Assembly: GCA_904063045.1 (NCBI GenBank)
Contig: CAJFCJ010000024.1
Location: 987,777-1,051,776 of the forward strand
DNA: 64,000 nucleotides
DNA from: Dimorphilus gyrociliatus
Taxonomy: Eukaryota > Animalia > Annelida
Direction of reading: 5' to 3'
Positions 16,157 through 52,835 of this stretch are shown here, in pieces (position 1 is the first letter of the stretch; every line of letters begins with the position of its first letter). The notes under the pieces were generated by a model. The model was not told the origin of the DNA, searched no databases, and worked only from the letters and a program-made list of their open reading frames with translations. The translations under genes were made by a program, and so were the position numbers.

Positions 16157-19100
16157 TTATAAATTAACTGGAGTTCTAATGTATGAATTTGTCATAGGCC
16201 TAAAATGTGTTGAAGTCGGTGGTAATTGATAAGTATGTCCAGTAAAACCAGTTCTGCCACTCGAACTGCTGGCTGGTTGTCTTAGAGGTTGAAGAGTTTG
16301 AGAATTTGGCTTATTTGGAGCACTTTTACAGCATAATACTCTACGCCAAGTGTATAATGTTTTAAATGACCAAATCCACATACCAGTTGTTACTCCAACA
16401 ATTAATTGCATAAGAATTCGAATTACGAATACTATAACTTCAGGTATTGAAGCTTGGAGCGCACAATGACTTTGATGTGGGCAAGGTCTCAACATCATTG
16501 CCTTCGTTCGCCATTCTTCCATATAAGTGTATTGGTAAATATAACAGGCCAATACGACGATAGTAGGAACGGTATAAAAGACGGCAAACAAGCCTAATCT
16601 TACCATAAGCCGTTCCAATCTTTTAATGTTAAGTTCATTAGGATAAGAAGGATCGGGGGGAGGATGTCTCCTCAAGTTGAATAGACCACAAAAACCGGAT
16701 AAAATAAATAAAGTACCGATAACCAATAAGGCTGACAACGGTACGATAACGAAACCCAAGAGGGCCGTACGATCATGACCACCAACATAGCATAAATTGG
16801 TTAATTGCTCTCCATCCACTTTTCGTGCAACTATAGCAACAACTGTGGGAACAGCCGGTAAGACCCAAGCCACTATGTGAAAGTAATTTGAGAGTTTGGC
16901 GATAGATTCTTTACCCCATCCTTTTCTGGCGGCCAGGAACCATGTAAAAGTAAGTATGGTCCACCATATTGCACCAGCCATTCCAAAGTAATATAAAAAG
17001 ATGAATATGACTAAACATACTGGCTTATCAAAACCATCTTGAAGCGTGTATAATCTGTATATATATAGAGAAAAGAGATGAGTAAAGTTAAATAATATAT
17101 GAAAATATTAAGAATTCTATAACAAAACACATAAATTATTTGTTTATATAATATCAAGATAAACTCCTTCTACTCAAATTATTTCTTTACCTAAAAGAAA
17201 AACTTTGGCTTATAAAATCAATATAAATTTACTCTCTTTCTCTCTCTCTTTGTTTTCTCATGTTTAAGCATATTATACAATAGAAAGCAAATGAATACTA
17301 TATAACTCAAGTTATATAAGATCAATGTTATTTCTTGTTCTTTACTATTATAGCGTAGAGGAAAGAGTGGGAAAAAATCTGTAAATTTATCTTTGAAACA
17401 AGTCAGAAGTAAAATTTTCAGCAAACTACTTCCATACTTTAATCTTTCCCCATTGCTTTCACTCTCTTTTCTGCTATCTATATATCCTGCTCACTCACTC
17501 GCTAACTCTCTCTCTCGCTCTCTCTCTCTCCCTTACTCACTCTCTATTTAAACGATCCTGTTTTAACCTCTACAATCATTTTGTATTTATATCTCTATCT
17601 GAAAAAATGCAGAAACATAAAAAATAACAACCTGTTATTTTCTTTACCACAGGCAGTCGTCTTGACAATAGCTCGAATTATATACGGAATTGCATAGGCT
17701 GCGTAGCAAAATGCTAACATTACTACGGGTCGTTCTGGGAACGGAAATCTTGAAGCGTCCAAAGCAAACGTGAGTACGGTCAAGAATGATGTAATAAAGC
17801 AGACAGTCGCCCAGGCAGTCATCCAAGATTTGGCGAACTGTCTGTCTGTTTCTCTGAATAGCACGTCTCTATCACATGCCATAGCGCATTTCTTCGTCTT
17901 ATTGGACATCGTCGGTACATAGACAAATCTATCTGGACAACGATTTATTTGATTCCTAGCTGAGTCAGAATTTCCAAAAGTATAATAATCGTCTCTGTTT
18001 CTACTGTCTTTGCGTCTGTGATCATTCTTTCTCATATCTTTAGAAGGTGGTTGCATGCAAACTTCTCCATCTTGGTTTTCTTCGGAGATAAGGTCCTCGC
18101 ATCTATTTAAAATGAAAAGAAATAATACAAATTTTAGAAAATTTGCTTTGGTAAGATTTCTAAGAAAAGCTTTGTATATTAAAACTCGAAGCACACAAGT
18201 AGACAGAAAACCTTTAGAGCGATGAATAATACATAAGATTGATCAGTTACAGGACTTAAATACAGCCTCCAGCTATGCAGAGGGTTTTCAACATAAACGC
18301 TTGGACACTTAACGGTCAAGGGAGGAAAAGTTATTTTTATCCATTTGGTATAATGGATAGGTTGCGTAGGACTCCCGCTGTTTCAAGAAGCCCATTTAAG
18401 AGTAAATCATTAATGTTCACAGTATTCGTCCATAAAATGGGATATATATATGTATATATAGGGGCTTTTACGTGAAAAAAGGAAAGCTATAGTGATATAT
18501 ATCTTTTAGCCAAATCAGGTATAAAATCCAACGGATAAACGGTTCTTCTCCTTAGTTTACAATAGAAAAAAATTTAAAACTGTGAATAGAAGTCATCAGC
18601 AAAAGAAAGAGCCCATACTATTAGCCCTTCTCTTCCGGAGTCAATATAACGGTATAGAGAATAATAGGTATATTGACTATACTAATAAATTTGTTACCTC
18701 TTCAATCTTCTGGGTGGCTTCTATTCAATATTGTTTGGAGATACTTTTTTAAAAACTTGATTCAAATAGTCAACTATTTTTCTAGAAAATATTTCCCAAA
18801 ATAAGGACAAAATTTGTGTTTTCTTCAACTTTTAATAGGTAATTATTATATCAAGCTAATATAGAATTTTTACAGTAATGAACTGTAAATATAGCTTAAT
18901 GCCTATTCTATACTTATACATATTTATATATGTTTGTGTTAAATGTTTATATATATCTATATATATGTATATATGTCTCAATTAACTTGAAATACAATAT
19001 GGCTCTAAGACATTTGTTTGGTTTTTTTTCATTTCTTCTTACCCGCTATAATATTACTTCAGTCTTTAAAAAGACAAGCAAAAAAAGCAAAACAAAAGAG

Positions 19101-19907
19101 CGATCTTATGAATAATCTGTTACGTTTCTTCTTAATATTCTTTAAGGAATCGATTGTTTCTTTATAAAATACAAAGTTTAACTTGATAGCCTCTCTTGAC
19201 AAAACATTCTTAACTTTGAAAGATTCTCTCTACGAAGAGTAAATTGATGTTATGGTAAATTGCTAGAAGAATAATAATAATATAATGGCTTAACAGAGAT
19301 AAATCCAGGTCTACCAATGTAATAACAATTTTCTAGGAATTATTAAGTGGAGTTACTACAAATGAATTCTTTTCCTAGGCCAGTCAGAAGCAATTTTAAG
19401 TGTGACTCAGGAAGTCAATATACAGTCATCAAGCATAACACATACAAGCATGCATAGTTATAAAGTGTATATATATATATATATATATATATTTCTTTTC
19501 TAAATATACCTAATAGCAGCTGGCCAAATAACTCCAAAGACCTTCAGAGTAGTCTCACAATCCTTTTTGACTTCTTCGCATAGTTCTCTACAAGGTCTTA
19601 CGACCATCGGTTTTGGAGGATATGCATCCGAGCACATTGGAACGACAACAGCACACAAAAAGAACTTTGCATGATCGTGGCATAACGAAGTTGATTGTTT
19701 GGTCATTCTGACCAGATGCATCACAAAAGCATTTTCCGTTTCTGATTGAGCCGTGTGTCCAAAAACATTCGGCATTAAAGTATAATTATAACCAACATTT
19801 TTACAGTCATTAATTGTTATTCTCTCGCATTTTCTGTATTTAGAGGAAAAGGAAGTTGTCGTCTGAAAAATAACGCAGAGTAGGAAAAGAGATTTAACTA
19901 TTTCCAT
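16157..19907 (-). CDS. Frizzled Wnt receptor (Fz4 or Fz9/10 clade, unresolved); exons 19907-19510, 18102-17632, 17054-16157
   Basis: Signal peptide, 10-Cys CRD, a RFxxPERP-type ICL1 motif, LYYFGMAGAIWW in TM3, RLERLMVRLG in ICL3, and the KTxxxW Dishevelled motif (KTLYTW). Confidence 0.95.
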
Positions 19908-20639
19908 CTTTTGTCAAGTATTTCCTCAGATCTGTCTTATAGCATGTTGAAGAGCCTTGATTTTTATCGAAAACGACTGAAATAGGTCTAGAACGGTTAA
20001 AATCGAGCGTTGTAAATCCTCATGAGTCGTTCACAAAGAAATGAATCTCATTTGAATATTTTTAGCGAAACTAGCGACATCTGTTTGCATAATAACATTA
20101 CACTATATTTTTATCATTTTTTTCACTTAGAAGCATTTTATTTATAATTTTCTATTTAAAAATGTATAAATTATTTTTTTTATCTTTTCTATTAAATAAA
20201 TATTGTGAGTTAGTAGGGACGCCTAGGTAACTTCCGGTGCATTTTGAAACGAGCTGGCTATTCTATTATAGCTCACCGGTCCGGATAATCTAGGCCGTTT
20301 AAAGCTCTAATAGTAACTGGCTAATAGTTCTTATTCTGTATTCAAAGTGATACGACAATAGGGAATACAGGAGTATCTTAGCTTACGTTAATCCTTAAAT
20401 TTGTTATTTTTTGTTGCATAGTTAAACCTTCATGCGAAAAAACTTTCTTTCTTTGAATAAATCTTCAATGTCGCGTTTTACAATTATGTAGATATATGAC
20501 CGTGTGCATTCGTTTGTGTGTAATTAAAGTTACTTTCTGGAGTTATATAAAAACCGGTCAAATGGAAAGTACTCTTGTAACCGGTTTGTTATCGCAACAA
20601 AATATCACTCCTTCCAACTTCTATAAATAGTAAGAGAAC

Positions 20640-22788
20640 ATGTGTTATAAAACCAATGATCTCTCTTGCGAAATGTTTAAAAATTGCCCTTCGAATTATG
20701 CACGAATGAGATTGGCTATCGAAAAAAAGATTTCGTCGAAGAACTCATCGCAATCTTTTAAAGATGATGGAAAATCAAACAATTTCCGGAACTGCGGTAA
20801 TAAAAAGTTTTCAAGGAAGCAATTCGAAGATGCTATTCTAGACTACAATATGGCTATTAGGTATGCTAAGACAAAGGAAGTACTGAGTATGGCTTTAGCC
20901 AATAGATCTGCTTGTTTATTTCATATGCAATTGCACGAAAGTTGTCTGAGGGATATAGATATGGCTTTAGTGGAGGGTTATCCTAAAGAGTTAGCCTTTA
21001 AACTTCTCCAAAGAGCATGCAAATGTTGCAAAGCTCTTGGACACAAAGACGCATATTTTCAAGCATACTTTAACAAGTTCAAAGTGATTATAATATAATT
21101 AATTATATAACATAAATAGTGATCGTACTTGAAAAAAATTGAATTAGTTTATAGCTAATTCCCGTTTATAATTGTAATTGCTTGATTCTTATTAATTAAT
21201 TGATTAATTATCCTATTATCGCTTTGAGGATCATTTAAAGTATATTAAAGATGGAGAGAAAGTTTTAGGAAATTTAGAAAAGGAATTGAAAGAAGTTACT
21301 CTATCTAAAAATTCGATAGATGAAGGATTTTTCTCAGATATACCATCGTTAAATAATAATAGGAATGCTAAATTTCCTAGTTTGTCTAAATCTGTAAAAG
21401 TATGTTATACAGAAGAATATGGGCGCTACATCGCAGCTGCAACTGATTTAGAATGTGGTGAATTAATCGTGGTGGAAAAGCCATATGCGAAAACTCTGTT
21501 AACTGATTGCACGTCTAGTCATTGTGATTACTGTTTACAACAAAGCTTTAACTTAATCCCTTGTAAAGACTGCCCTGATGTTCTATTTTGCAGTTTGGAA
21601 TGCCAAACTAATGCTCAGACTTATCACAAATACTTGTGTACATATTTAGAGTATTTACGGAATGCCGGAGTTGATAGAGCTGGTCTTTTGGCAGCGTATC
21701 TAGTCAGTCGGAAACCACTGACATATTTTATTAATTTTAAAGTTGAGTATGACGATAAAAAGTACAACTTTTTGCCAACTTTTTCGAACGATTCCGATAT
21801 CGATTACGTTTACGAATGGAATTCTTATCAAAATATTTTTAGCCTTAAAACTAACGAAGAGAACCGATCTGAACAAGATCTTTTAGATAGAATAAAAAAT
21901 GCTTTGATTATTACTGACGTATTTGAAAAATCCGGCTATTTTGAATCTCAACTAAACAATGAAAATAAAAGTTGGATTGGAGGTATTATTCTCACGCATT
22001 TACAAAATTTCCCTTGTAACGCTCATTCAATACACGAAGAAATTTTAACACCTGGCTCTAGTGCAATATCTACTGAACTTGCCGAAATTGGTTGTGGAAT
22101 TTATGCTACTTTAAGGTTTTTGGGTTTATACTATAAGCAATTACCTTTATCAGATAATCATTCATTGTTAGAGTTGTTAAACGATCTACTACCAATTTAG
22201 TAAACCCAAAAATCTTATTGTACAAGTCTCTTCAATCATTCTTGTACACCGAACGTTTGTCGAATAAATTATGGTGATGATATTTGCGTTGTTAAAACAA
22301 TAAGAGCTGTCAAAGCGAACGAAGCTCTCAATGGTAACTATGGTGCTATTTTTCAAGTTGACTTGAGGAAAGAACGTCAGAAGAAGTTATTAGATCAATA
22401 TTTCTTTTTATGCCAATGTGACGCCTGTAAATTTGATTATCCTTTGTTCGAGAATCTCCCCCAATTCATATCAGACCAACATTTTAAATGTCATCATTGT
22501 GGATCGAATGTAGAAAGTAATAAGTGTAAATCTTGTTGTGAATTTAATTCACTTGACTGGTTTCATACAAAAAAGGAACTTGTAGGAAAACATGCTCTGT
22601 ATACAACAGCATTTAATGATATTGTAGAAGATTGGGCGAATTGTAAGAAGAACGAAAAAATTGTCTTGAGCTATTTAATTAGTTTAGAAAATATTGTTAT
22701 TTGGCCAACAATTGAAGCGTCTTCAGCTCAGGAATCGCTTAAGAAGATATGGTCTGTAAGTGCAAGACATAGATTAAATTATAGATAA
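20640..22788 (+). CDS. SMYD4: SMYD4-like TPR-SET-MYND lysine methyltransferase, paralog A; exons 20640-21083, 21229-22115, 22227-22788
   Basis: TPR (GNKKF...ALANRSACLF), SET-N (GRYIAA...VVEKPY), MYND (CDYC...CKDC...FCSLEC...H...C), SET-C (SLFNHSCTPN, NYG) and post-SET (CQCDAC). Confidence 0.9.
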
Positions 22789-22913
22789 GGAGAACTTTGA
22801 GATTATAACAAGGAAAGAATAAACATGAAATAGCTGTTTGTTCATTTTGAATACGTTATATTGTTTATCTTTTATTCCAAGTATATTACAAACGAGTAGT
22901 ACTTACACAATAC

Positions 22914-25900: not shown

Positions 25901-26522
25901 ATCCACGACTTATGGCTAATAGAAGAGCATTGTATATATTCCAATTGTTACAAAAGTTTGATTTTAAAAGTATGTTCAAAACTATAATATTCTCGTGGAT
26001 AATAGCTTTGTGTAGAACGGTATGTTTATCGTCATTTTGGCAATTAACACAGGCTCTATCTTGATATAAGAGTTTAGAGATTAAACGACTATTAACATCG
26101 CCTTGATATTCAGCTATCTTGAATAATTGTACGGTTGAGTCGTGCTTCTGCTGTTTTTCACTGTCATCTAACTGAAAAAGAAGGAAAGTCGGGTGAAGAA
26201 GAGAGAAGAGAAAAATTGATATTAGCAAAACTTTCAATATTTCCCTCTTTCATATTTTTCATCTAATAACTGATAACACTTGACAACAGATTGTTTACTT
26301 ACCAGCTTTAAATTCAATATAATGAATAAAGTTAGGGAAGGTTGCTTGCATTTTTAAAATATTTAGTAAAGATATTCGGCTATTAAACGAAAGTTAATTT
26401 ATCAATAATTAAACTCTTTGTACCTTTGAACTACGGCATACTTTGCAGTCGTAGATAACTTCAACGTTCAAATCGGCTTCATCCCGATTTTGAAGAAGAT
26501 CAATTTGCTTTGATCTACTCAT
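22914..26522 (-). CDS. TRPC-like (canonical TRP) cation channel, multi-exon; the 5' exons near 26303-26522 are tentative
   Basis: Ankyrin repeats (VTPIMLASQKNQ), TRP_2 linker (SRTKLNVYRALAS...DPIFKSFEL), RLKLAVQYGLKKFV, KTPIVKF, pore LFW, LINMLIAMM and the TRP box EWKYAR. Confidence 0.9.
24730..24775. repeat. (AAT)n microsatellite in a TRPC intron
   Basis: Direct reading of the sequence. Confidence 0.85.
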
Positions 26523-27400
26523 CCTGCTTATATTCCTTCCGCCAAAATGTCAAAGAATACTGCAGAGGAAATAGTAAATTCAATACCATAACTTGCGTCA
26601 CTCTTCCCCTCAAGAACTAAAATAGTTTTTCTATACTCTTTTAACAATTTATAATCTATTCTCAGAGCATATTCTCTTATTCAAAGTTGGCCTACAGCTG
26701 CAATATTAGTCAAGCTATTGTAAAAATGATATTAAATTCGTTTTCTTACAACTTCTGCTTTTACTACAATTAAATGTATGAAAGAAAGTATAAATGATTC
26801 ATTAATAGAAATCTTAAAAAGTATCTTAAATCTCATACAATATAGAAAGATTGAATTTTTGTATCCTATCGTCAGGGTGTTACGAAGCCGTACAACAACA
26901 ACAATATGATTATCTGCGCTCTACTTAAACTTTCTCAGTCGGCTCTTCTCTTAGCAGTTAAATATAATTTTATTGTCAAAATTCGATCGTCACGCCTATG
27001 CTTTCTTCATTAACATTTTTAAAATCTTTTCAACGCGAATTAGGCGTATTCCACTTAAACAAAACAATCAAATACATGCTTTTATTACACTACGGTAGAT
27101 TTTTATAAACAATTTCTTGGTTTTTTTTAACAATATACTTATTCAGTTCTGAATGATATGAAAAAGCCTGAAATATAGACTTTAATCGATAGTTTAAATA
27201 GATGAGGCTCTGTTGCAAATATTTGGAAAGTGTGCACAAGACTTTTTTAAAGATCCCTAGACAAAATACTATAAGTAAATACTATCAAAAAAGCATGTTT
27301 AATTCAAAAATACGTCATATTATTGTTTTTCAAAATTACCATCAATTTAATTTTTATCAAAAAAACACTTTATTTTTGTTAAATATATAATCAAAAGACA

Positions 27401-28523
27401 TTAGTCACGTCTTAATGGGAATCTATCAACTTTTACACCGTCCTTTGTTACCACGTTGATTATCAGTGAATCACCGGTATAAATATCCCTTTCTGCTGCT
27501 GAAATAAACACGTCCTTAACCAATTCCAATGCCTTATTTAAACTTAGTGGAACATGAGTAACGCCTGTTTGGTTCTTAAAACCAATCTACAAAAGATAAA
27601 ATCCAGAGTAAATTATAAACTTTTGACGTATGAGTAATGTTAACTCTTCTTTAATATATTACCTGATTATCTAAAAGTGGTTGCAAAATAGCTCCTGCTG
27701 AACCAGCTGCGCGGAAAACTTCTCTCTCATACGAACCCACAGGATCGTAGCTATAAACGCAACCTTTTCCTGGATAGAAAGTTAATAATATATATTATTA
27801 CTATAATCATAGCAAACACTAAAAGTTGATAATACAAACCATTTTCATCCAACCCTCCAATTATATTGTAGACATAATACGGAAAAAATCGTTTGTAATA
27901 TAACATTGTTGATAGCATGGCTGCAATGGCTGAGGATGACATTTTCTTATGATGATCGTGTTCGTACATCTGAAAGTATAATTTCAATGTAACATAAATG
28001 TAAGAATATGAGTTAAGTCAGGAAGGAGTAATACGAGGCCTAGTTAGAGTTTGTTAAAATTCAGTTCGCAAATCGCAAAACGAATTAATTTAACCTTAAG
28101 AAAACTAAATTTTCAATACCTTTAGTCTCCAATCCATAACTTTAGTCATCGTTAAGACATCTCCATGAAATCCAGCACAAGCTAGGACAGTTTTGTCAGT
28201 CCTGTATCAAGCAATGAGTTTAAATATTCATATAAGCGTAAATTCCGTCAACTTACAATTGATAGGTTTTTGGATAATCACGTGTATGAATAGCAAACCC
28301 TTCGCTCAGTCTGGTATCAGCTGCAATAACGGCAAAATCCTCTCCAGCTACAGCAAGAATTGTTCTGGGGGGAAAAAAAGCGATAATAGGCAAATTTCTC
28401 AAAAACTTGCCGGATCAACACTCACCCTCCATTGAAAGCGTAAGGACTCCAACGTTGATGAGATATTGCCGAATCTGAAGAATTAAGATTGCTAAAATTT
28501 CTTGTTCCGAATGCAGCCTCCAT
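27401..28523 (-). CDS. PSMB1: 20S proteasome subunit beta type-1 (beta6), six exons
   Basis: [71 protein letters not shown] and a LRRD C-terminus. Confidence 0.97.
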
Positions 28524-28828
28524 AGGAAAAATCCAAATGACAGATATTTAATCAAAATATAATGATTCGGAGTTTTTTGCTATGATAGCTTTGATAAACT
28601 GAAAAATTTTTCTCGATTCGGCAAAATATATACCAGTTTTTTCAGCCCATGCTATTCTACCGCTTTTCTTTCAGTTGCATAAGTTGTTAACTTTGTATGC
28701 GGAAAATAATGAGTCAGCTTCAAAATTAAATTTGTAAGTTGAAAACAATTTCGTATTTTCGAGATAATTTGTCTTCGATACCGAATCGTAAAACTAACCG
28801 AACGTTATTCTACACCCGGCTATTAAAG
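28524..28828. promoter_or_regulatory. Probable bidirectional promoter between PSMB1 and LSM2
   Basis: The two start codons diverge with about 305 bp between them. Confidence 0.6.
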
Positions 28829-29431
28829 ATGGTGAGTTTTTGATCCACTTAAATAACATAATAATATTTTTGCTTATTTATTAAAAAGCTATTCTACTCA
28901 TTCTTCAAATCTTTGGTCGGTAAAGACGTAGTCGTTGAACTAAAAAATGATTTATGGTAAGCGATAATAGAGTAAAAATTAGAACTCCCAAATTACATTC
29001 TAACACTAAAGAAAGTTTTTATATATTTATTGAATTTAACATACTTTTTAACATTTAATATAAAATAAAATATAATTTACTTTAGTGTTAATTAAGTACT
29101 TAGTATGATTCTTTAATTTTATTAAAGATATTGAGAAAATTTTTAAGGTTCACATTAAAATGAAATTTTTTCTGCTAATTGATCATCGTTGATATGTATT
29201 TTACACCACAGCATTTCTGGAACCTTACATTCTGTTGATCAATTCTTGAATATCAAACTTACTGATATAAATGTCACCGATCCTGAGAAGAATCCTCATA
29301 TGCTATCAGTGAAGAATTGCTTTATACGAGGATCAGTTGTTCGCTATGTCCAATTACCAGCTGAGGAATGCGATACTCAACTTTTACAAGATGCTGCTAG
29401 AAAAGAGGCAGCTCAGAGTAAAAGTCGATAA
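28829..29431 (+). CDS. LSM2: U6 snRNA-associated Sm-like protein LSm2; three exons, the first coding only the ATG
   Basis: ATG|gtgagt is followed by LFYSFFKSLVGKDVVVELKNDL and ISGTLHSVDQFLNIKL...LSVKNCFIRGSVVRYVQLP, near-identical to LSM2. Confidence 0.97.
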
Positions 29432-29649
29432 AAAATAATTATATTTACATAATTAATATGTATATAATTTGTGATTACTTTTTGTCTACATACTTTTGAA
29501 TGCTAAGATGACAATAGCTCTATACCCTATATATAGGCTTATCTACGATTATGTAATTTTGACTGATCATTAGTTAATAAAAAATAGTTTTTATAAATTA
29601 TTTTATTAGTCGAAGGCAAAAACAACTTAAGCAACTTGTTAGATATTCT

Positions 29650-32107
29650 TTAAAATTTGGCAATCCAATGTTTTCCTCCTATTGACCAGACTTTTCTGAG
29701 AAGATCTTGTCCCAAATTTATATCATGATTCGGCCACAGAGTATATTTCTCAAAAATATTCATACAATCCAAAATAATATGCTCATTCTTCTTACTAAAC
29801 TTCCAACTTTGTTTCATCTCTCCAAAAGCAGCTAGTAAGGAATGGTAGTGATTTTTTAATTCCGAAATAGTCTCACACATATTATCGTAAGATTTTTTGC
29901 AGAACACGCACTTCTTAATATAAATATGACCTCCACAAGAAAGGCATTTGAAGTTTTTCCCCGCTGCTATTGGCTTCAATTTGTTTGCAGTCGGAAAATC
30001 AAACTTACAAGCTTCGCAATCGCAATTAAAGAAGTACTGACACCATAATTTTTTCTGACGCTCTTCTGCTTCCATATCTTGAAGGGATTAGAAGTGGAAT
30101 ATAGAGAAACTTAGACAGTATCATGACATTTATACATTCATGATGATTATATAATTAGCTAGTTTTTCTAATATTTAAAATGCTAACCTTGAAAAGCAGT
30201 TCCATAATCGATAGTCAATGGGTCATTCATCTTTACTCTTCGTATGGTTTTTAAAGCAACAACATCATCGTTATAGTACACAAAACAACAATTAGGAGAA
30301 CATGAATGATTCAATAAACTAAGAGTATTATAGACTGCTGAACCTGTATTACAATGCTTTATTGATATAGCGGAATCATTCTCCTTAAATACAGCTTCAT
30401 AAGTACCAACAGCATTAGTCTCAAAAATGAGAGACTGCCTATAAATTAAACCTGCACACCAAGACTTTTCATCCAAATCCAATTCCTTATGAAAGTAACC
30501 CGCTGTCTCCAAACAATCCATAATAATTAAAGCTTCCTGAGCTTTAATAAAACAATTCAAAAGACTAGTCTTCAAAACTTTTGCACTATTGGCCTTTAAA
30601 TAGAAATAATTCCAATAGCTATCATGCCTATAAACATAATCAACATCTGACGAGTTTGAGAAAGTCTTCAGAAACTTATACTTATTTTCTAGCCATTCCT
30701 TTCTTAAACGAAGAAAAAATTCTGAATTCCTCCTTGTAAAGAGTCTATAAGTTAGAAAGCCCGACCGGTTAATATCAGACATTCTCAAGTGTTTCAAAAA
30801 GCCGCAAGCAAACTAAGTCGAGTTTTTACATACTTGTATTTATGACTAAAATTAATTATTTTTACCAAGTTATTTAATAAGAATATGTGACCTGAATTAT
30901 ATTAATTTCTAAGAAAAATTAGGTGGATGAATGCTTAGTGAACAAAATAAATAATGTTAAGTGATGAGATGTTGAGCATACTCATGAAAGGTGAGCATCA
31001 CAATGAAAGCATTTACATGCATCCAAGGACAAGTATAGGTGAGTAACGTCATTATAATGACAAATATATATGGCCTAGAAAAAAGAAGAGTATTTTGAGT
31101 GTTGATCTCATGAATAATTTTCTTAATTTTCCTATCAGTTGTTTTATGAAAAAACTCGACTTGATGAAAATAACGAGCATTATCCATACAAATTCTACTG
31201 CAATATAAAACGTCCGGGCAATAGTCGCAAGGAATCAAACAATAATTGCGTTCTAAACAGTTATCGCAATGACTGGATATCATGGATTCAGAATCGCAAT
31301 CTAAAACTCTTTCAAATGGTTTTTCAACAGCAACGAGTTGCCCAATGGCGAGATCTTTCGTAGATTTTATGAAACGACCTTGCTCTTCCGTATAATGTAC
31401 TACTACATCATGGGTTAGACTAGGGAACTTCGAATTAGGTATTTGTATCTTGGGTGTGCGAGAAAAAAGGTGCGAATAATTGTCTTGTTTATGAGTAGTA
31501 ATAGCTAATAAATCCTATATAACATATACATATATATATTAGTTTTTTTATTATAAATAATTAAAAATTGCTTTAAAAATTCAATTACCTTTAATAACTT
31601 CTCAATTTTTTCACCTTTCATTTCAATGCCATCCAAGGACTTTTTAAACTTTTTCACGCATTCTTTTACTTTATCTTTTAGACCTAAAGCCTTGTAAGAC
31701 TTGCAAGCTCTATAATATAGCTTATATTCTAGTTCTTTCGGATATCCTACTTCTAGAGCCATGTTGATATCTCTTAAACAGCATTCATATTCTTCTATTT
31801 GAAATAGAACTGCCGACCGATTCGAGTAGGCTAAGCTTAGATTTTTACCAACAACTGCATATCGAATAGCTACATTATAATGGAGGAGAGCATCGTTAAA
31901 TTTAGTTTCAGCGAATTTCTTGTTGCCTTTTTCGCGGTGTTGTTCCGAGTAGGTGTCGTTTTTAAAGTTCTTCTTTGCTTTTACAAAACTTGGATTAAAT
32001 TGATAAGCAATTTTCATCCTATCAAAATCATTGTCGCAAGTAGCAAATTTATCGTATAATTCACTACTTTCGTCCGTTTCGGCGAATGGATAAACGCACT
32101 TTTCCAT
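29650..32107 (-). CDS. SMYD4: SMYD4-like TPR-SET-MYND lysine methyltransferase, paralog B; exons 32107-31589, 31504-31161, 30812-30188, 30077-29650
   Basis: Same domain order as paralog A: TPR, GRFIKS...AVEKPF, MYND (CDNC...CDYC...YCSRIC...HQFAC), SLLNHSCSPN, DYG and CDCEAC. Confidence 0.9.
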
Positions 32108-35100: not shown

Positions 35101-35138
35101 CAAGTAGTGACAGTTGGCAGTTTAAATAACCGCATTTT

Positions 35139-35307
35139 CGGAACCGGAAGTTGGTTTCTGCCACAGCACATTTTCGTATATACACAGAAGGAGTGATCTC
35201 AAAAAAACTTTCATAACCACTACCGGAACACGATTATCTTATCACACATTTAAATTCTCAAAGAAAATTCTGCTAAAAGTAGCCGGTCTAGCCTGCTTCC
35301 GGTTCCG
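35139..35307. promoter_or_regulatory. DDX1 promoter with ETS-type CCGGAA motifs, including an inverted pair of CGGAACCGGAAG
   Basis: CGGAACCGGAAG at 35139-35150 and its exact reverse complement at 35296-35307, both within about 220 bp of the DDX1 ATG. Confidence 0.55.
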
Positions 35308-35356
35308 GAGTGATATCACGTTGCGAAAAATTTCTGCCTAAAATCTCACTGTAAAA

Positions 35357-41300: not shown

Positions 41301-41821
41301 TCGCCCAGGCACCGCAGCTTTTTGTTTGCCCGGTTATGACGTCATGTCATGAATATTAATGAGGCGGCGACGCGAAACGCGAGGCAGTCGTACGTCTGGC
41401 GGCGGACCGGTGTGTATCGAAGTTTTATTTATTCAATATATAACAGTTTATCTATATAGTTCGATATTCGTTATTATTTATTAGATCTATATTTCTTTAT
41501 ATGAAAAAAAAATAGCAACATTTAGATGGTAGAGTGAAAATTGACAAATGTAAAGTTATGAAGTTTTACGATTTGTATTGATGCGGGTGACTGATTATAA
41601 TGAAATAAATGGCGAATGAAATATATTTTGCAATAAAACATAAAGTATATAAATATATAAAAGGAATATATTACTTGTTAAAAGAACTAACATTCTCTCA
41701 TCGAATATGAATATTTCTATTCGCTATTTCTTTTCGAGTCATTTTTTTTGTAACTTATCAATAATATTTGCCATTGCAGCTGTTAACTTATAAAGGATAT
41801 TATACAGAATTCATATAAGTC

Positions 41822-41855
<34 letters not shown>

Positions 41856-41866
41856 GTATATCTGTC

Positions 41867-41900
<34 letters not shown>

Positions 41901-44900: not shown

Positions 44901-47900
44901 AATTAATGTTTGAGGCAATAAACTCATAGTGGATCATAAGCAATTTTTTGCTGACTCTTCATATTTGAAGAAGATACGTATAACTACTATACGTAGTTAG
45001 CTTACTTGCTAAAAAATGGGTTTTTTCCTTCCTTGAGAGCCATGCGCTAACTTTTTTACGTAATTTAAATTGATTACTCCAAAAAATCGTGTTATAATGT
45101 ATCATCATTCGTCGTATTCTAAGTGCTCATAAGCACTTTTTAATGCAAACGTACATACTAAATTGAACTGAATTAAATATTCTGTTAAAATCTTCTTACC
45201 TATATATACAGTATATATATATTAGTAGTTAAAATAATTATTTATTCCTGTTGCAATTTCATTATTAGAATCGCTTAAGGGTTAAAAGATATATTCGCAG
45301 TCATTATTCCGTATCATCAGTTCTTAGTCATCATACCCTAAGCATAGTAAATCAATTTTTCGGATGGGCGACTCTAATCTTATACAATAAATAGGCTTTT
45401 GGTATTAACGACGTTATCGGCTGTTATCTGGATTTGGATTCATACAGCGTTAAATGGTCGAAGAATGGTGAGTAAATTATTTTGTTCTCTCTGTATTACA
45501 AAGTACAAACTATTGGAAGTATTTTTGTTATTAATAACATGTCAGTGGAAAATGTTGTGCAAATATTTTGTAAACGTTCTCTAGATAAGGTTATCGTTTG
45601 GGGTAGCTTATTTTCAAATATTTCTTCGGACCTATTACGATTTATATAAATAAACAGTGCTATATATTTCTTTACATTTGTATGAATTTTATTCACCAGG
45701 AGTTGATTTTGGAAAAGCCTACGATATTCCCGCACATTTACAGAATGAGACCTTCTACGCTGCTGTGTGCCTTAAGGTTACTTTTTTTTTCTACCAAAGA
45801 TTTGTTTAACCTATTTTGTTTCTTTTAGAATGCGGAAATGAAGTTCAATTTCGGTCACCAAAAATTTGCTTATGAACCAAAAGAAAACTTTAAAGGGCTA
45901 AATACTGCTGACTCAAGTAACATTGTCGTTTCTAAGATTTCAGGTATTTGCTTTGTTGGGACAAAACACCTTATGTTGATAGTAACTTTTTTTGCTAAAA
46001 ACAAAATACTAAAACAATTTAACGCAACAGGTGGCTCTACTGGTCCCGTCACCAAACGTCCGAATGCTCCTTACTCAATTATTATTGAACCTAGTCGAGA
46101 ATTGGCTGAGCAGACCTACAATCAGATAATAAAGTTTAAGAAGTATTTGAAAGATCCAAAAATAAGGTATGTTAGGTCAAAAATTCATGTTATTATCAAA
46201 GCCTATTGTGGAAGAAATATTTCTTTTACATTCTGTTAATCTGTGGTAACTCTATCGTAGTTTGTCTTCTACAAACGTTCATGTACTTAGACGTTGTGTT
46301 TCTTCCTTTAGTGGACATTTAGCGCAAATTACCAGCATACTTTTGTATACGCCAAAGAGAATATCCTTTTAAGTTACAATTAGATATCGATTCCTTTCTC
46401 TAAAAATAATCATAACTCATTTCTAAATATTTTCCATAGAGACTGTATTTAAAAAGGATAAAGATAGAATTCCTATAAAAGCGCCATCTCTTGTCGTACG
46501 CAATACCTTTAGCAAAAAGATTACTTGTAGTCTCTATGACCTAATTAGCAAAAAAAACCTCTTTTCTCTGTTTTAAGCAGAAATACTGTAGTAAATGCAT
46601 TTATGCCTGTGTAAAGAATTCTTTAAAGTAGACGAAATCTTCAGTCTGAATTTAATTTAAAGCTTTTTACTGTTAATAACATTTTACATTTCTGTACACT
46701 TTATGTTGTAGCATAATATGTAAGCATAATGAATTATCAATCTTAATGTTTTGTCTACTGAAACTGTATACTGTACTTTAAAGGAAAACAGTAGATACTT
46801 AATTTTTTGATAATTAAGAAGCCATGCTTTAAAAGATCTTTCAAATATTTCCCTCAGAGAATTGCTTATAATTGGTGGAGCTAGTGCTAAAGAACAAGTA
46901 GACGCCCTAAATTCTGGTATTGATATAGTTGTAGGAACACCTGGGCGATTAGAGGATTTGATTTCTTCTAATAAATTGGAATTATCGGCTTGCAGGTATT
47001 TTTTTACTAAGAAAATTTTTTATGCCTGACATTAGAAAGTGATTTATTTGCTCTTCTAGATTTTTTGTTCTCGACGAAGCCGATGGCCTACTTTCTGCTG
47101 GTTATGGTCATTTAATTGAACGGTTACATAGGTCTATCCCAAAAGTGACTAGTGATGGGAACAAACTACAGATGGTTGTGTGTTCCGCCACACTACACTC
47201 TTTTGATGTTAAGAAAATGGCAGAGAAATTAATGCATTTTCCTACTTGGATAGATTTGAAAGGCCAGGTAACTTAAATTTTTTTTCTTTCTCTTTTTTAA
47301 AGACAAACTGTGTACTTATTGCATTTTTAACCTGCAAATTATCAGCTAAATTGTCATAAAAGGTTGTTAAAAAAAGGATTAAATGAAGGTTGTTAGTTTA
47401 CAATTAATTAATTTACAAAGTGGTTTAGAGATTGAAAAAAAAAGAAATAAGCTTTTTTAAACGGTTTTATTTAAGTAGATGTAATTAAGCCCAAATAAGA
47501 GCATCTTCGACCTTGAAGTTTGTCTCCAAGATCCATTAATATGGTAGAAATTGCTTTCAAACATAATTAGTCACGAAACATTTTTAATGTCAGTAGGATG
47601 TTTTACCAATCTATATTCAAGTTAAAGGGTACCATCTAGACTACCAGAAAGGTAGAACTCCCTTTTTTTCTATTTTTTAACTAAGTACCTTCAATTAGGC
47701 TTGAGATTAGATATTAAAACTATCTTTAGGTCGAAAACATCTGCCTTTAATAGACTGGCTAAACATATTTTACTATATGCTTCATTATCCCAAGAGAAAT
47801 ATAAAACAAACATTTTAAAAGAGATATAGAAAGATATTACCTAAATCCTATGTGTATCCTATTGACAAATCACAAATATTACCAGTTCCTATAAAATACA

Positions 47901-50900
47901 GTATAGAGATCCTCCTCAATTAATATTGCATTTAGTATTTTCTAGAAATAGACAAAGAGGTATTGGCTTTTTTTTTATATACCATATATGTACAAAGCTA
48001 TTATAATTTTATATTTTACATAAACATGAGAATGCATAGTAACGCTCTTCAATAGGTAATGATACAAAAGCCTTCACAAGGTGATTATTAACAATTGTAG
48101 AAAGCTTGCTTTTTTTCGCTTTTTCTTTGGTTTACCAACGTTACTAGTAGATGCGTAGTTGATTTCTTAATCAAAGAAACTTGAAAGAAAACTCTACTCG
48201 TAGTTAGGAAAAGAAATATAATATACATAAATATAATTTCATTTGTTTTGAAAGTAAATTATTTCTCTAAAAATTATCACTCGCCCAAGTAGAAACACTC
48301 GCTAGGGAAGTGCTTTGCCATACAATACTTGAAATATTTATATCTCTTGTTATATATACAGTGCATACGCGTACAAATATGTACATCCATAGATGCATAT
48401 AAATATTAGGGATTGACATATTTTAACTAGAAATATTTGTTGAAAATGACTATTAACTAAGCATAAAAAGTAGATATAAAGCAGTAATTAATATATAAAC
48501 TCAGTATGGATTAATTTTTTTCGTTTTTCTTTCAGCTATGTAATTTTTTTATTCTTGAGATGTTATTTTACATTTACCTGATCGGTATTTATACTAATTA
48601 CACTTTTATTCATAAGAAAATCCCTTGCAATTAATGAAAAGGGTCACTGCAAGTAGGTAGATGTAGGAAAAGAATATTATAGGAAAGCGAAAAAAACAAG
48701 TTTAAGCGTATTTTAGTAGCTTTATGACTTTTACATATAATACAAGAACCTTCTCGCCAGTGAGACGAATACTAAGTTGACTCTGCAGCAAAAAGTCAAT
48801 GAGATTTTTCAATACAAAATTAACAGACTCTGGTGAAATCCTCTTCACGTCTATAAAATTTTGATACACATTTCGTGCAAATTTTGTAAAAATATAGGAA
48901 ATCTAGACTAATTATTACCATAAAATGAATATGATATCAGAACTTGAATGTTTCGTAGATAATTATATCTCCTCCTTTTCTCTTGTTAGCTTTTGTTTAA
49001 CAAAGACTATTTAAAAAATAATATTAAAAGAGAAACCAACAAAGCTTTTTTGTCAACTTTCATCAAAAATAAGTATTTTTCAATCTACTTAAGGATGTCT
49101 TAAATTTTTTGTTCTTTGTACTATAATTAATGTGTTACTATCCGACTTAGCTATTACTATTTTTTTTGAAATAGGATAGTGTTCCCGAGACCGTACATCA
49201 CGTAGTATTAACTGTTGATCCAAGAAAAGATGAATCGTGGAAAAGCATACGGAACGGAATACAAACGGACGGTGTCCACCATAACGATAAACAAAGAATG
49301 AATGTTGAGACTGCGGGTTTGTAAATTTTTAATACCCTTCTTGCTTATCAGGATTGCAACAAATTCGTTTACCTCTAGGCTACTAGAATAAGATAGCGTT
49401 AGTTTTTTTTCTTATTCTATTGACAATGTAATATACAAGCATTAAAGTCATAAGTCATACAGAAAATATCCTTGAAAAGTTATAACAATGAATTTCTATA
49501 CAAAATGTATGATGGAAAAAAAAACTACAGTCCATAAGAATAGCATAAAAACAATCTCAGTCAAAGACATCTATATACAATATATACAGTAGGTTGATTT
49601 AAAATGTATATGAAATGCAAGCAAATCCTCCCTACTTCTCCTCCGAGGAAATATCTGCAAGCTGTATTCCCTTTTGAATTGTTAAACATAAATAGAGAGC
49701 AATCTGTTCGACTTGTAAATCTTTTAGTTCTGCAGATAGATTCAAGTAAGAATATATCTTTTGAATTAGGGTATAATGTGTTTGCCCTTCGTACTAAATC
49801 GTTAATTCGCGCACAGAAATTCGTCAGTTATAATCAAAGTCTCCAAGGTTATTTGTTGCTATTTATTACTACCGGTTGTAAATCAGGTTAAAACGGCTTT
49901 AGTGAGTGATTCTAATTGATTGTTACTGCCTAACCCTCGTTGTTCTATTAAGGTTGACCCGAGGGAGCATTACGAATTATTTTTTACTTGAAAAAATTAG
50001 CTTTTCTTGCCTACAATGGCCACAAGCAGAATCCACAATGCTCGTATGATGAAGTGGGGTTAATTCCTACTTATCCTTATTTTCTAAATCACATCCTATT
50101 GGTGTATTTCAGCTGTGGTTAAGGAGCATTATAAGAAATTGATTTTTGAAGCCTGGTTATTCCATTTTGTCGAATTTTCAGTTCCTATTGAAATTAGGAT
50201 TGTAGAGCATTAATGATTTTTTTTAGCTGGTTATTGTTGTATTTGTTGTTCCTTTTTTTCCGAAAGGTTTATTTACATTAATTCAATGTTAAGGTTACAA
50301 TCACATATAACAATTTTACACTGTCTCAATCAATTTGGCTCATCATCTTTTCTTAATCATACTCACCTGGTTTACATTGTTTGCATTGTTTTAGCATTAT
50401 TTCTGATCCATCTTCAACTGTTTCAGCGTTTCGACGACTTTTCGGTCTCTTATAACAAATTCTATAAAAGCCTCGAATTCCAGGTGCTGTCAATTGAATC
50501 ATAACCGCAGTAAAACTACAGTGAGCAAAGGCAAGCACTTGAACAACGACATCGGCCATTTGTATTTGTGCTTTCCATTTGCTATCTATCAGTTGTAGTG
50601 CAGTCGTTGAAAATTGAATAATGTTAATTAGAATAAGAGGGAAATTTAAAAAAATATAACTTAGAAGAATAAGAAGAGAACACTTTGACCAAGCTTCTTC
50701 TGTTCTATCGAATGTCAAGTTAACTTCATCTTCTTCGATTTGTCGTGAATGCAATTGAAATTTTTGTCGACTTCAGTTAGGTTTTTATTATTTTTCGAAT
50801 TCCATTTTTCAAATTTAAAGATAGCTTCTATTATGGGTTGTACATCTATTAACTCTAGAATACTCTCTCTCTCTCTCTCTCTCTCCCTCTCTCTCTCTCT

Positions 50901-52835
50901 TTCTCGCTCTCTCTTTCTCGCTCTCCCTTTCTCTCTCTCTGCCATTTCTTTCGACGTATATTTGTGTTGACGTAAAGTTGGCACAAGTCTAAGCTATTTA
51001 TTATTTTAATATATATACATATTTTTGAGGACGTATTTTTTAGAAAGATGTACAGATATCGGCTGTATTAACGTTATATAAATCTTAATACTACATAAGG
51101 CACAACTGCAATAGATGAAAGGAGCTTTGATTGTCTTAAGTTATATTTTACCTCTCTTAAGATGAAAAATGGTTTTAATATTTAGCTATATTGAAATTTG
51201 GTCTTGGGAAAATAATAAAAACCCCCTACCTAATGCCAACAGTAACGGCAAAAGCTATTCCGATACCGAACAATATCGGTGCATAAGTGTTTAGACTTGC
51301 AATTACGTAGGGCCAGTAGAGCGTATGAAAATCTGGATATACCAAATCGAAATAACACCCCCATATCTTGTCGATAGTATGAGACCACATGGCGTGAACA
51401 TCTATTGATAAAACTCCTATGAAAGCCGCCGTTGCAAGGCATTTGGCTTTAAAGGGCGAACATATGAAAGAAGGTTTGAAAAGAAACACTGCCCTTTCAC
51501 CGCCCATTAGCACAGTACACCATGCAGTCCAATGAAGAAATGTTTGGTCCGTAACTGTATGTAATTTACAAGTCCATTCATACAATTGAGTGAGATGTCT
51601 AGTTTCTGTAAGCTTTGAAATTGCGTCTAAACCGGGATCTAATAAAAGAACCAGAACGTTTGCTGAACAAATTAACTTAGCGAAAGATGCAGTACAATGT
51701 TCATGATTGATGTTGGAGAGAGAGGGAACAATAGCTAAATTACCAAATATTCCTATTACCGCCAGAATGGGTAGCACGATTGATGTAAAATAGTACTTCA
51801 CCGACTCTTCCGTAGTATTGAGGAGCGTATTATTTGAGGTCCTGTTCATGTTCCTGTACAAAGAAAGAGCGTTAGAACTGGTTAAAAGAAAATTTTATTC
51901 TAAAGGAAATGAATCTATAATTAGGAGATTGCTATATTTGGTAGATGTGCACTTTTTTTAATTGGAAAATTTCTGCACCAACATGGTATTTCAATTGTAA
52001 ATCATTATTACAGTTTGTTCTAGAACAATAAATATGGGAGAAAAAAGTTATTGCTTTTGTAGGCCTAGATGTTAGAAAAGAATAAAAAAGCAGGGCAAAA
52101 CAAGGAAAAATCAACAATCATCATGTAAGAAAATAAGCCTGTTTGCATGTTAATGGGGATCTGTTGAAGGTACCCTTACGTATATTACTAGGCTGCCACC
52201 AAGATTAGCTGGAAATTCATCACGTGATTGTGCCACCGTGTTAGTTTTTTGTAACAACCGGAAGAACCTACCATCTGAATTGTAGACATTCACTTGTTTA
52301 AGTCTGAAAAAGGGCTTTAATCTTTTCATATTTCCTAATAAGCCCTATGAAGAGCCTGATATTTACGTAATATTTTCTATTCATTCGTTACTTTTTTCTT
52401 TTATTTAAAAGTTTCTTTTACATTAACAGCACTTTACGATCAAAACCTCTAATATTCGATTATATAGTTTGTTCTTTTTTCTCCTACTGTTACATCTTAT
52501 TTACCCACCTTCTTTGACTAGAGAATCTATCAACTATTTTATGTCTAGCTTGCTATTTCTTTCTTTCCTTTACCTCCCACTCTTGATTCTTAAGAATGTT
52601 AGAATTTTTTCAACATTTTTAATGTAATAGTCTCCAATAAATAGCATCAAGATATATACCATGATATCTACTTGTACTTAATTAAATGCTATAAATCTAT
52701 GTGTTTATCTTAACTGTTAAGAAATTTGACATCCAATAGCATCTTAATACAAATTAGTAAAGGGCAACGTTAATTAAGGTGAAGTGGCAAATCTTAAGAC
52801 ATGGCAAAATCAGATAAAATGTGTACCTGTTGTTG

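Follow-up and report, generated by a model that had tools for sequence, protein, structure and literature searches.

The question raised by this locus is why several of its introns have two ends that are complementary to each other, and whether this complementarity results from chance, from the origin of the introns or from a role in their removal. The material was a 64-kb window (the whole stretch of DNA that was analysed) of the annelid Dimorphilus gyrociliatus (GCA_904063045.1), with a G+C content of approximately 30%. A preliminary description of this window had named five introns with complementary ends, and all five repeats were found again at their places:

21084..21228, plus strand: intron 1 of SMYD-A (SMYD4-like, DgyrCDS13322), 145 nt, donor GTGATT, acceptor GAG.
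21078-21093 with 21214-21228, plus strand: helix of SMYD-A intron 1, exon position -6 to intron position +9/10 with the last 15 intron nucleotides, a 21/25 repeat.
22116..22226, plus strand: intron 2 of SMYD-A, within the SET domain, 111 nt, donor GTTTTT, acceptor AAG.
22112-22129 with 22200-22217, plus strand: helix of SMYD-A intron 2, exon position -4 to intron position +14 with intron positions -27 to -10, a 16/17 repeat in which the mismatch is a G.U pair.
30813..31160, minus strand: intron 2 of SMYD-B, 348 nt, donor GTCGAG, acceptor TAG.
31162-31145 with 30832-30815, minus strand: helix of SMYD-B intron 2, exon position -2 to intron position +16 with intron positions -20 to -3, a 17/18 repeat.
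50771..51229, minus strand: intron of a GPCR gene (DgyrCDS13329) nested antisense in a DDX1 intron, 459 nt, donor GTAGGG, acceptor AAG.
51228-51209 (extendable to about 51191) with 50794-50777 (extendable to 50812), minus strand: helix of the GPCR intron, intron positions +2 to +21 with -24 to -7, a 15/15 repeat (27/33 if extended).
18103..19509, minus strand: intron 1 of Frizzled, 1407 nt, donor GTATAT, normal pyrimidine-rich 3' end; the repeat has 11 exact positions, a bulge and a short second stem, and sets a purine run against the pyrimidine tract.

The splice junctions, so far inferred, agree with RNA contigs (SMYD-B intron 2) or with the official annotation (both SMYD-A introns and the GPCR intron). 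Spliced RNA contigs from runs X2 and X4 skip exactly 30813-31160, and unspliced contigs occur in X2 and X3. The junction FNKFK/DHLKY of SMYD-A intron 1 is present in the annotated proteins P0151 and P0162, and the junction GIYATL/SLFNHSC of intron 2 in the isoform P0162, so that both introns agree with the annotated 630-aa product of DgyrCDS13322; the isoform P0151 (471 aa) retains intron 2. The GPCR junction VTVGI/SRQKF is present in the annotated protein P0154. A search for Logan transcripts encoding the full SMYD-A or GPCR proteins returned only the genome record.

The complementarity was scored against two kinds of controls, namely 3000 random pseudo-introns of the same length taken from the window (ungapped score), and mismatched pairs made by re-pairing real intron ends. 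Against the pseudo-introns p was at most 0.004 for each of the five introns, and at most 0.001 for the two SMYD-A introns, SMYD-B intron 2 and the GPCR intron. Against the mismatched real ends the four best introns reached p ≤ 0.005 and Frizzled intron 1 p = 0.02-0.03; for these four the complementarity lies above that of control pairs. The five repeats score 11-15, compared to 4-7 in ten control introns. A scan of the whole window yielded about 70 inverted pairs with a score of at least 12 within 2.6 kb.

To these scores a comparison with a sister lineage, R1, can be added. It is represented by syntenic Logan contigs (L001, L003 and L010) with exons 74-89% identical to those of D. gyrociliatus. 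The arm pairs were compared via each lineage's own duplex and not via MAFFT columns; MAFFT misplaced one 3' arm, that of SMYD-A intron 2. In R1 the scores of the four introns are 11-16, while eight control introns have no end-pairing in either lineage (score 4-8). The intron interiors, compared with a pairwise aligner against shuffled sequence, align no better than shuffles. Beyond position +6 the ungapped identity of the arms does not exceed that of controls in three of the four introns, and it is therefore the pairing that was kept.

This is also seen in the individual changes. SMYD-A intron 1 is paired at 14 of 14 positions in R1 (L001 3300-3538), with a C-G pair replaced by U-A at exon position -4, a synonymous TTC/TTT change, and U.G by U-A at +2; its longer fold is not conserved. 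SMYD-A intron 2 (L001 4429-4528) keeps a 16-bp helix in which positions 9, 12 and 14 are altered on both sides. SMYD-B intron 2 (L003 4013-4370) is paired at 15 of 15 positions with U-A turned into A-U at +11. The GPCR intron (L010 4621-5071) forms an 18-bp helix with one bulge, its U-run and A-run having been shortened together, and its 5' arm is kept in a third lineage (L007) as well. This leads to five robust two-sided changes (SMYD-B intron 2 at +11, SMYD-A intron 2 at +9, +12 and +14, SMYD-A intron 1 at exon -4) and four one-sided changes that are switches between G.U and Watson-Crick pairs, a covariation signal that consists of few events in two lineages (three for one arm) and in which shifts in homopolymer length inflate the numbers for the GPCR intron. 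In a simulation that distributes as many substitutions as were observed over the two arms, independently of each other, a helix as stable as that of R1 arises with P = 0.0015, 0.019, 0.0035 and 0.0005 for the four introns.

Frizzled intron 1 behaves differently. Its ends in R1 (L001 and L008) score 6 at -7.4 kcal/mol, as controls do, and since the repeat was lost in the sister lineage this intron is indistinguishable from chance. Two further candidates in DDX1 were rejected: a 16/17 repeat between exon 46140-46156 and intron 46835-46851 (intron 46167-46857), which has strong splice sites, and a 26-nt intron-exon repeat; neither is conserved in R1. The Frizzled and DDX1 repeats look like chance, and they served as negative controls for the conservation test. 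The proposed class of five introns thus holds for four, which lie far beyond chance and are conserved, but not for Frizzled intron 1. Chance complementarity in AT-rich introns would be favored by the base composition of the window, by the abundance of inverted pairs and by the loss of the Frizzled and DDX1 pairs, yet for the four introns it is scarcely credible: their individual p-values and the low control scores are set against it, all four helices recur where the interiors are randomised, and the sister-lineage comparison already refutes it, leaving it to stand for Frizzled intron 1.

The comparative sequence data show that the terminal helix of the four introns is under selection. As the pairing was kept by matching changes on both sides while the middles drifted, it is almost certainly functional in splicing. 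The arms themselves are unrelated to each other in sequence, as the preliminary description had noted. A search of the window against Rfam gave zero matches, which places the helices outside the known RNA families.

The four introns share a common anatomy. Their first 15-20 nt pair with a segment near the other end, which stops 1-21 nt short of the 3' splice site, and the GU of the 5' splice site lies inside the paired stretch in all four introns and in both lineages. In the three SMYD introns the helix also takes in 1-8 nt of the upstream exon. The acceptor used is always the first AG past the helix. The conserved helices comprise 14-18 bp and enclose loops of 70-420 nt; folds of the full-length introns contain 14-33 end-to-end pairs with a mean pair probability of 0.88-0.97 in the terminal helix, and the duplex energies range from -16 to -25 kcal/mol, in both lineages alike. 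Stable end-to-end pairing that is conserved with covariation between two lineages is what is expected of a structure-bridged intron.

The splice signals of these introns are poor. The non-consensus character ascribed to the SMYD donors is reflected in the numbers: the donors of the four introns match CAGGTAAGT at 4.75 of 9 positions, compared to 6.1 in control introns (p = 0.001). The odd hexamers GTGATT, GTTTTT, GTCGAG and GTAGGG are conserved in R1. Three of the four acceptors are AAG or GAG, and the pyrimidine fraction is 0.41-0.53 in three of the four introns. All eight orthologous copies are GT-AG introns.

We therefore favor as the probable explanation that these are four spliceosomal GT-AG introns with poor signals, in which a selected terminal helix clamps the weak splice sites together. 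The suggestion that end-pairing is selected to rescue weak sites is supported by helices kept in R1 by changes on both arms and with donors weaker than those of controls. The helix would loop the intron shut and place the weak donor beside the branch and acceptor region, and an intron of 100-460 nt may thereby look very short to a spliceosome tuned to about 66 nt; the median intron length of D. gyrociliatus is 66 bp, and its short introns are spliced best (PMC7854359). Structure, rather than strong U1 and U2AF signals, would then enforce the pairing of the splice sites, and the acceptor would be chosen as the first AG downstream of the helix.

Two arguments can be raised against such a clamp. 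With the 5' splice site buried in the helix, U1 should bind less readily and not more so, and the retention seen in two of the four introns (SMYD-B intron 2 and SMYD-A intron 2) is just as compatible with a helix that inhibits or regulates splicing. The helix could accordingly be read as a brake that sequesters the 5' splice site and slows splicing, is conserved for that role, and leaves retained or detained introns that tune expression. The position of the donor GU within the helix in all four introns and both lineages is in line with this, and so are the RNA contigs of SMYD-B intron 2: one contig of X2 retains it fully, the X2 depth in its bin is about one quarter of that in the adjacent exons, and contigs of X3 enter it from both sides, while the neighbouring intron 3 is without retention. 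For SMYD-A intron 2 there is the annotated isoform that retains the intron and is truncated inside the SET domain. However, weak donors and acceptors already splice poorly by themselves, making an added brake unnecessary, and the weak hexamers are conserved in their own right. Spliced forms dominate in X4 and correspond to the annotated full-length products, and the depth of contigs is a poor gauge of level. We consider this reading unlikely and retain the clamping of weak sites as the preferred one.

A different kind of explanation concerns the origin of the introns only. The arms could be the terminal inverted repeats (TIRs) of MITE-like DNA transposons that made the introns, and persist by inertia or by processes at the DNA level, for example repair of one arm templated by the other, without any role in splicing. 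A gain is suggested by the positions of the introns. They differ between the two SMYD4 paralogs, the end-paired SMYD introns being specific to their paralog, in accordance with the earlier observation, and the nearest SMYD4 homologue from outside, P0003, is encoded by a single reading frame of 694 aa without interruption, on a 2.27-Mb contig; as P0003 is intronless, each of the five SMYD introns was probably gained. SMYD-B intron 2 (348 nt) and the GPCR intron (459 nt) have MITE-like lengths, and a TA-GGG...CCC-TA pattern, similar to Tc1/mariner, can be made out in the GPCR helix. Mariner-type MITEs occur in the D. gyrociliatus genome (PMC7854359). The duplex energies of the sense and antisense strands do not differ consistently, a symmetry compatible with maintenance at the DNA level.

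What argues against this explanation is the lack of copies and of insertion marks. A blastn comparison of the five introns with the window gave only (TA)n and (GA)n matches and no further copy. For SMYD-B intron 2 the comparison was extended to the genome run X1, whose DNA contigs match positions 26300-32250 at a likeness of at least 80% only in scraps of 22-39 nt besides the locus itself, and the intron is single-copy by this measure. The many near-identical copies that mark introners are hence missing in the window for all five introns, and genome-wide for SMYD-B intron 2. Inspection of the flanks in both lineages revealed no consistent direct repeat or target-site duplication; for SMYD-B intron 2 the candidates are CA/CA in R1 and CA/TA in D. 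gyrociliatus, and a possible TA/TA at the GPCR intron is inseparable from the palindromic end of the helix. Neutral arms should moreover have been randomised as the interiors were. The arms coincide with splice sites and weak signals, and arms 100-450 nt apart are poorly suited to templated correction. An origin-only explanation is thus quite improbable.

R1, with exon identities of just 74-89%, has all four introns, which consequently predate the split and are not recent. The proposal that several TIR families are now generating introns here, with active introner families behind the four introns, is not supported. Since the nearest SMYD4 homologue from outside lacks introns, an ancient transposon origin is nevertheless possible: the arms may go back to TIRs of elements inserted long ago into genes that then had no introns. 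At present the arms are unique, are maintained by selection and do not belong to an active family.

The last alternative is an excision guided by the helix outside the standard pathway dependent on U1 and U2AF, as proposed for the nonconventional introns of euglenids, with GT-AG being incidental or partly required. Both splice sites are located at the base of the helix, and the donors GTCGAG and GTTTTT are extremely poor matches to U1. GT and AG are, however, exact in all eight orthologous copies, the first-AG acceptor at a variable distance of 1-21 nt is what spliceosomal scanning predicts, and the two cuts are not at a fixed offset on the helix, all of which makes this alternative very improbable. 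Cutting of the RNase III type was rejected because this offset takes values between 3 and over 10 nt.

The four introns resemble several known systems without coinciding with any of them. A mirtron is a short intron that folds in its entirety into a hairpin, the stem measuring at least about 22 bp and the loop being small. The pairing of the two intron ends is shared with the introns described here, but their 14-18 bp helices and 70-420 nt loops do not agree with a mirtron. Yeast introns can contain "zipper" stems between the 5' splice site and the branchpoint. In zebrafish, bridging helices can impose the pairing of splice sites in (AC)m-(GT)n introns (Lin et al. 2016, PMC4691745). With both of these systems the four introns have in common the complementary opposite ends of a GT-AG intron and weak or dispensable polypyrimidine and U2AF signals; unlike them, Dimorphilus has arms of unique sequence in place of simple repeats, its helix extends over the 5' splice site (and over exon nucleotides in SMYD) where theirs stays within the intron, the host belongs to the spiralians, and the evidence is comparative.

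The hairpin-ended introns of the tunicate Fritillaria borealis are thought to be derived from MITEs and to be removed by the major spliceosome despite poor signals (PMC11282704). They are likewise found in an animal, at lineage-specific positions and with inverted-repeat ends, but have AG-AC, AG-AT or other non-GT-AG borders and recognisable repeat families, whereas the Dimorphilus introns are GT-AG, single-copy within the sequences compared and older than the lineage split. Nonconventional and "intermediate" introns of euglenids share the paired ends, the conserved structure near the ends, the absence of a polypyrimidine tract and a suspected MITE origin; they differ from the canonical Dimorphilus introns in having non-canonical borders, with a short CAG/CTG pairing at +4 to +6 and -8 to -6, and are excised after conventional splicing, yielding circles (PMC11282704). 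Introners (Gozashti et al. 2022, PMC9860276) also occur in aquatic hosts at lineage-specific positions and have inverted-repeat ends with splice sites at or near the repeat, but the Dimorphilus introns have no multi-copy family that was found, no clear target-site duplication and no recent origin.

The genome paper of D. gyrociliatus makes no mention of end-paired introns of this kind. For the annotation they have a practical aspect, as one of the four (SMYD-A intron 2) is read through in an official gene model, truncating the SET domain. The introns reside in a compact, slowly evolving genome and are specific to a gene or paralog. They touch on the questions how a new intron becomes spliceable and to what extent RNA structure can replace splice-site signals, represent a natural series for structure-assisted splicing in a bilaterian, and form a link between ordinary GT-AG introns and the hairpin introns of transposon origin in tunicates and protists. 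As a tentative and more far-reaching idea, in a subset of Dimorphilus introns the terminal helix, and not recognition by U1 and U2AF, might set where the spliceosome cuts. Such introns might have started as inverted repeats inserted into genes without introns, and could represent a spiralian counterpart of the tunicate and euglenid hairpin introns with borders that are still GT-AG. If true, this would explain the tolerance of donors as poor as GTCGAG.

The terminal pairing of four introns with weak splice sites is under purifying selection. They belong to two SMYD4-like paralogs (SMYD-A introns 1 and 2, SMYD-B intron 2) and to a GPCR gene. The genes of this AT-rich window (Dimorphilus gyrociliatus, GCA_904063045.1, contig CAJFCJ010000024.1; G+C approximately 30%) were mapped from open reading frames and sequence:

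Frizzled, exon 1 at 19510-19907, minus strand
SMYD-A, 20640-22788, plus strand, protein DgyrCDS13322/13323 (SMYD4-like)
TRP channel, between SMYD-A and the proteasome gene, minus strand
Proteasome beta subunit, after the TRP channel, minus strand
LSM gene, between the proteasome gene and SMYD-B, plus strand
SMYD-B, 29650-32107, minus strand
DDX1, from 40063, plus strand
GPCR (DgyrCDS13329), 50353-51861, antisense, nested in one DDX1 intron

An Rfam scan of the whole window at gathering scores gave zero matches, so that the let-7 noted earlier at 53461-53530 lies below the Rfam threshold.

The preliminary description had claimed inverted repeats at the ends of five introns, the four and Frizzled intron 1, and all five were found as stated:

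SMYD-A intron 1, 21084-21228, plus strand, end repeat 21/25
SMYD-A intron 2, 22116-22226, plus strand, end repeat 16/17, the mismatch being a G.U pair
SMYD-B intron 2, 30813-31160, minus strand, end repeat 17/18
GPCR intron, 50771-51229, minus strand, end repeat 15/15, extended 27/33
Frizzled intron 1, 18103-19509, minus strand, 11 exact, a bulge and a short stem after it

Compared to 3000 random pseudo-introns of equal length drawn from the window, each of the five reaches p <= 0.004. With the ends of real introns in all mismatched combinations as the reference, the four reach p <= 0.005 and Frizzled intron 1 p 0.02-0.03; the end-pairing score of control introns is 4-7 in D. gyrociliatus. A window-wide scan also returned a candidate GT..AG unit of about 197 nt at 59802-59998 (plus strand) with inverted arms of 22 nt and a score of 13.

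The junctions inferred for the four agree with RNA contigs (SMYD-B intron 2) and with annotated proteins (SMYD-A introns, GPCR). Three RNA runs and one DNA run were mapped on 26300-32250, and ten more RNA-confirmed introns from this contig mapping served as controls. Spliced contigs in the RNA runs X2 and X4 omit precisely 30813-31160, a single X4 contig of 1971 nt joins all four SMYD-B exons, and the intron is independently confirmed by the paralogs, which align gaplessly across the junction (YHKYLCTYLEYLRNAGVDRAG vs FHQFACGFLKHLRMSDINRSG). The annotated DgyrCDS13322 (630 aa) carries the junctions FNKFK|DHLKY and GIYATL|SLFNHSC, therefore both SMYD-A introns are as inferred; the junction VTVGI|SRQKF in DgyrCDS13329 equals the inferred GPCR intron. 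SMYD-B intron 2 is also found unspliced in one X2 contig (30783-31190) and is entered from both sides by contigs of the third RNA run (X3), and the neighboring intron 3 gives no unspliced signal in the same RNA contigs. An annotated 471-aa isoform, DgyrCDS13323 (20640-22200), runs into SMYD-A intron 2 and stops there, with its SET domain truncated.

With SMYD-A exon 2 as query, an open reading frame of 76% identity was found on a Logan contig of 17.7 kb. This diverged sister lineage (R1; L001/L003; runs SRR23372216/28/29/31) has the same gene order (Frizzled, SMYD-A, TRP, proteasome, LSM, SMYD-B), and more contigs from the same runs hold its GPCR/DDX1 region (L010/L014) and Frizzled exon 2 (L008). 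Exon identity to D. gyrociliatus is 74-89%, and most intron interiors are unalignable. Over 26300-32250, the D. gyrociliatus DNA run X1 contains no second copy like the R1 region, so R1 is a different organism rather than a paralogous region. For a third lineage closer to R1 (R2; L007, SRR31837527), the sequence covers only the first GPCR exon plus 95 nt of the GPCR intron. In X6, a metatranscriptome run from coral, 14% of the sampled words of 26300-32250 are present, so the sampled coral may harbor an animal similar to Dimorphilus. Upstream of SMYD-B, at 32242-33852, four blocks without a long open reading frame are 81-88% identical to R1; they may be non-coding sequence that is conserved, or a gene with small exons that the annotation lacks.

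All four introns are present in R1 at identical positions and with the same odd donors.

End pairing in D. gyrociliatus and R1 (ungapped score, duplex energy in kcal/mol)
SMYD-B intron 2: D. gyrociliatus 15, -21.3; R1 16, -22.4
SMYD-A intron 1: D. gyrociliatus 13, -21.6; R1 12, -16.3
SMYD-A intron 2: D. gyrociliatus 14, -22.9; R1 11, -17.7
GPCR intron: D. gyrociliatus 15, -23.5; R1 14, -25.0
Frizzled intron 1: D. gyrociliatus 11, -14.6; R1 6, -7.4
Eight control introns: D. gyrociliatus score 4-7; R1 score 4-8

The proposed class of five introns thus stands for the four and falls for Frizzled intron 1 (6, -7.4 kcal/mol in R1). The interiors of the four align between the lineages no better than shuffled sequence, SMYD-B intron 2 is conserved at both ends only, and in three of the four the ungapped identity at +7..+20 and -25..-4 is not above controls. 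It is complementarity rather than sequence that is preserved. From D. gyrociliatus to R1, SMYD-B intron 2 changes from U-A to A-U at +11, and the U.U mismatch at +12 is a pair in R1. SMYD-A intron 2 changes at +9 (G-C to A-U), +12 (U-A to A-U) and +14 (U.G to A-U). In SMYD-A intron 1 exon position -4 changes from C-G to U-A, where the synonymous TTC/TTT is mirrored by G to A close to the acceptor. Another four changes affect one side only and switch between wobble and Watson-Crick pairs. Each arm of the GPCR intron is one nucleotide shorter within a homopolymer run (U5:A5 to U4:A4); the automatic pair-change count for this intron is inflated by such run-length shifts and was not relied on.

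If the observed number of substitutions is put independently on each arm, simulated helices are as stable as those of R1 with P = 0.0015, 0.019, 0.0035 and 0.0005 for the four. When each intron is folded in full with its flanks, the terminal helix has a mean pair probability of 0.88-0.97 in both lineages, and control introns give nothing consistent. The R2 GPCR intron keeps 22/25 of the 5' arm, and the sequence past the arm is unalignable even to R1. The claim of selected end-pairing is supported by these retained helices, two-sided changes and randomized interiors. Within the GPCR intron a 60-nt block (50953-51013) with 84% identity to R1 and two ACGTC motifs may serve as a regulatory element, either for the GPCR or for the DDX1 intron that hosts it.

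The single additional intron-end repeat of the window-wide scan lies at the DDX1 intron 46167-46857 (691 nt; exon 46140-46156 with intron 46835-46851, 16/17). It was rejected as probably chance on account of its strong splice sites and of its decay in R1 (to about 10/17, without compensation). Chance repeats, here and in Frizzled intron 1, fail to survive the lineage comparison. A 26-nt inverted match (23/26) of 44930-44955 in a DDX1 intron to 45854-45879 in a downstream DDX1 exon has no R1 equivalent at the homologous place.

The four share their anatomy. The donor GU lies inside the 5' arm, which starts at -2 to -8 in the SMYD introns and at +2 in the GPCR intron; 1-21 nt separate the 3' arm from the intron end, and the acceptor is the first AG past that arm in 8/8 copies (four introns, two lineages). 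The donors are weak, as had been claimed for the SMYD introns, with 4.75 of 9 positions matching CAGGTAAGT compared to 6.1 in controls (p = 0.001, the two lineages not being independent). Three of the four have AAG or GAG acceptors and three a pyrimidine fraction of 0.41-0.53. Since controls of 110-690 nt with good signals lack a helix, it accompanies weak signals and not length alone.

The D. gyrociliatus spliceosome is tuned to introns of approximately 66 nt (PMC7854359). Pairing in the pre-mRNA would probably bring the donor close to the branch/acceptor region, in the manner of the bridged introns of zebrafish (PMC4691745). The main difficulty for pairing as an aid is that the 5' splice site is buried in the helix and two of the four introns are retained, which makes a regulatory brake a serious rival. 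The comparison of sense with antisense does not separate maintenance at the RNA level from maintenance at the DNA level.

Regarding origin, we infer that the four may stem from old insertions. The five introns of SMYD-A and SMYD-B share no position (0/5), as had been claimed for the three end-paired ones, and the nearest outside SMYD4-like homologue found (P0003, on a contig of 2.27 Mb) is an uninterrupted open reading frame of 694 aa; together this points to an ancestor lacking introns and to five later gains. Mariner-type MITEs exist in the genome (PMC7854359), and the GPCR helix ends in TA-GGG...CCC-TA. The active TIR families proposed earlier are not supported, as there are no additional copies in the window, nothing beyond 22-39-nt scraps at >= 80% likeness in X1 DNA contigs for the SMYD-B stretch, no consistent target-site duplication, and the split from R1 came after the gain of all four introns.

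The four would work like structure-bridged spliceosomal introns. They resemble the introns with hairpin ends described in tunicates and euglenids (PMC11282704), but have canonical borders and no repeat family. In the window, and for the SMYD-B stretch in the X1 contigs, they also lack the multi-copy feature that defines introners, which a survey places in two animal groups only (PMC9860276). Hairpin or non-canonical introns go unmentioned in the genome paper (PMC7854359). End-paired introns are of interest for intron evolution and splicing, and they are directly testable.
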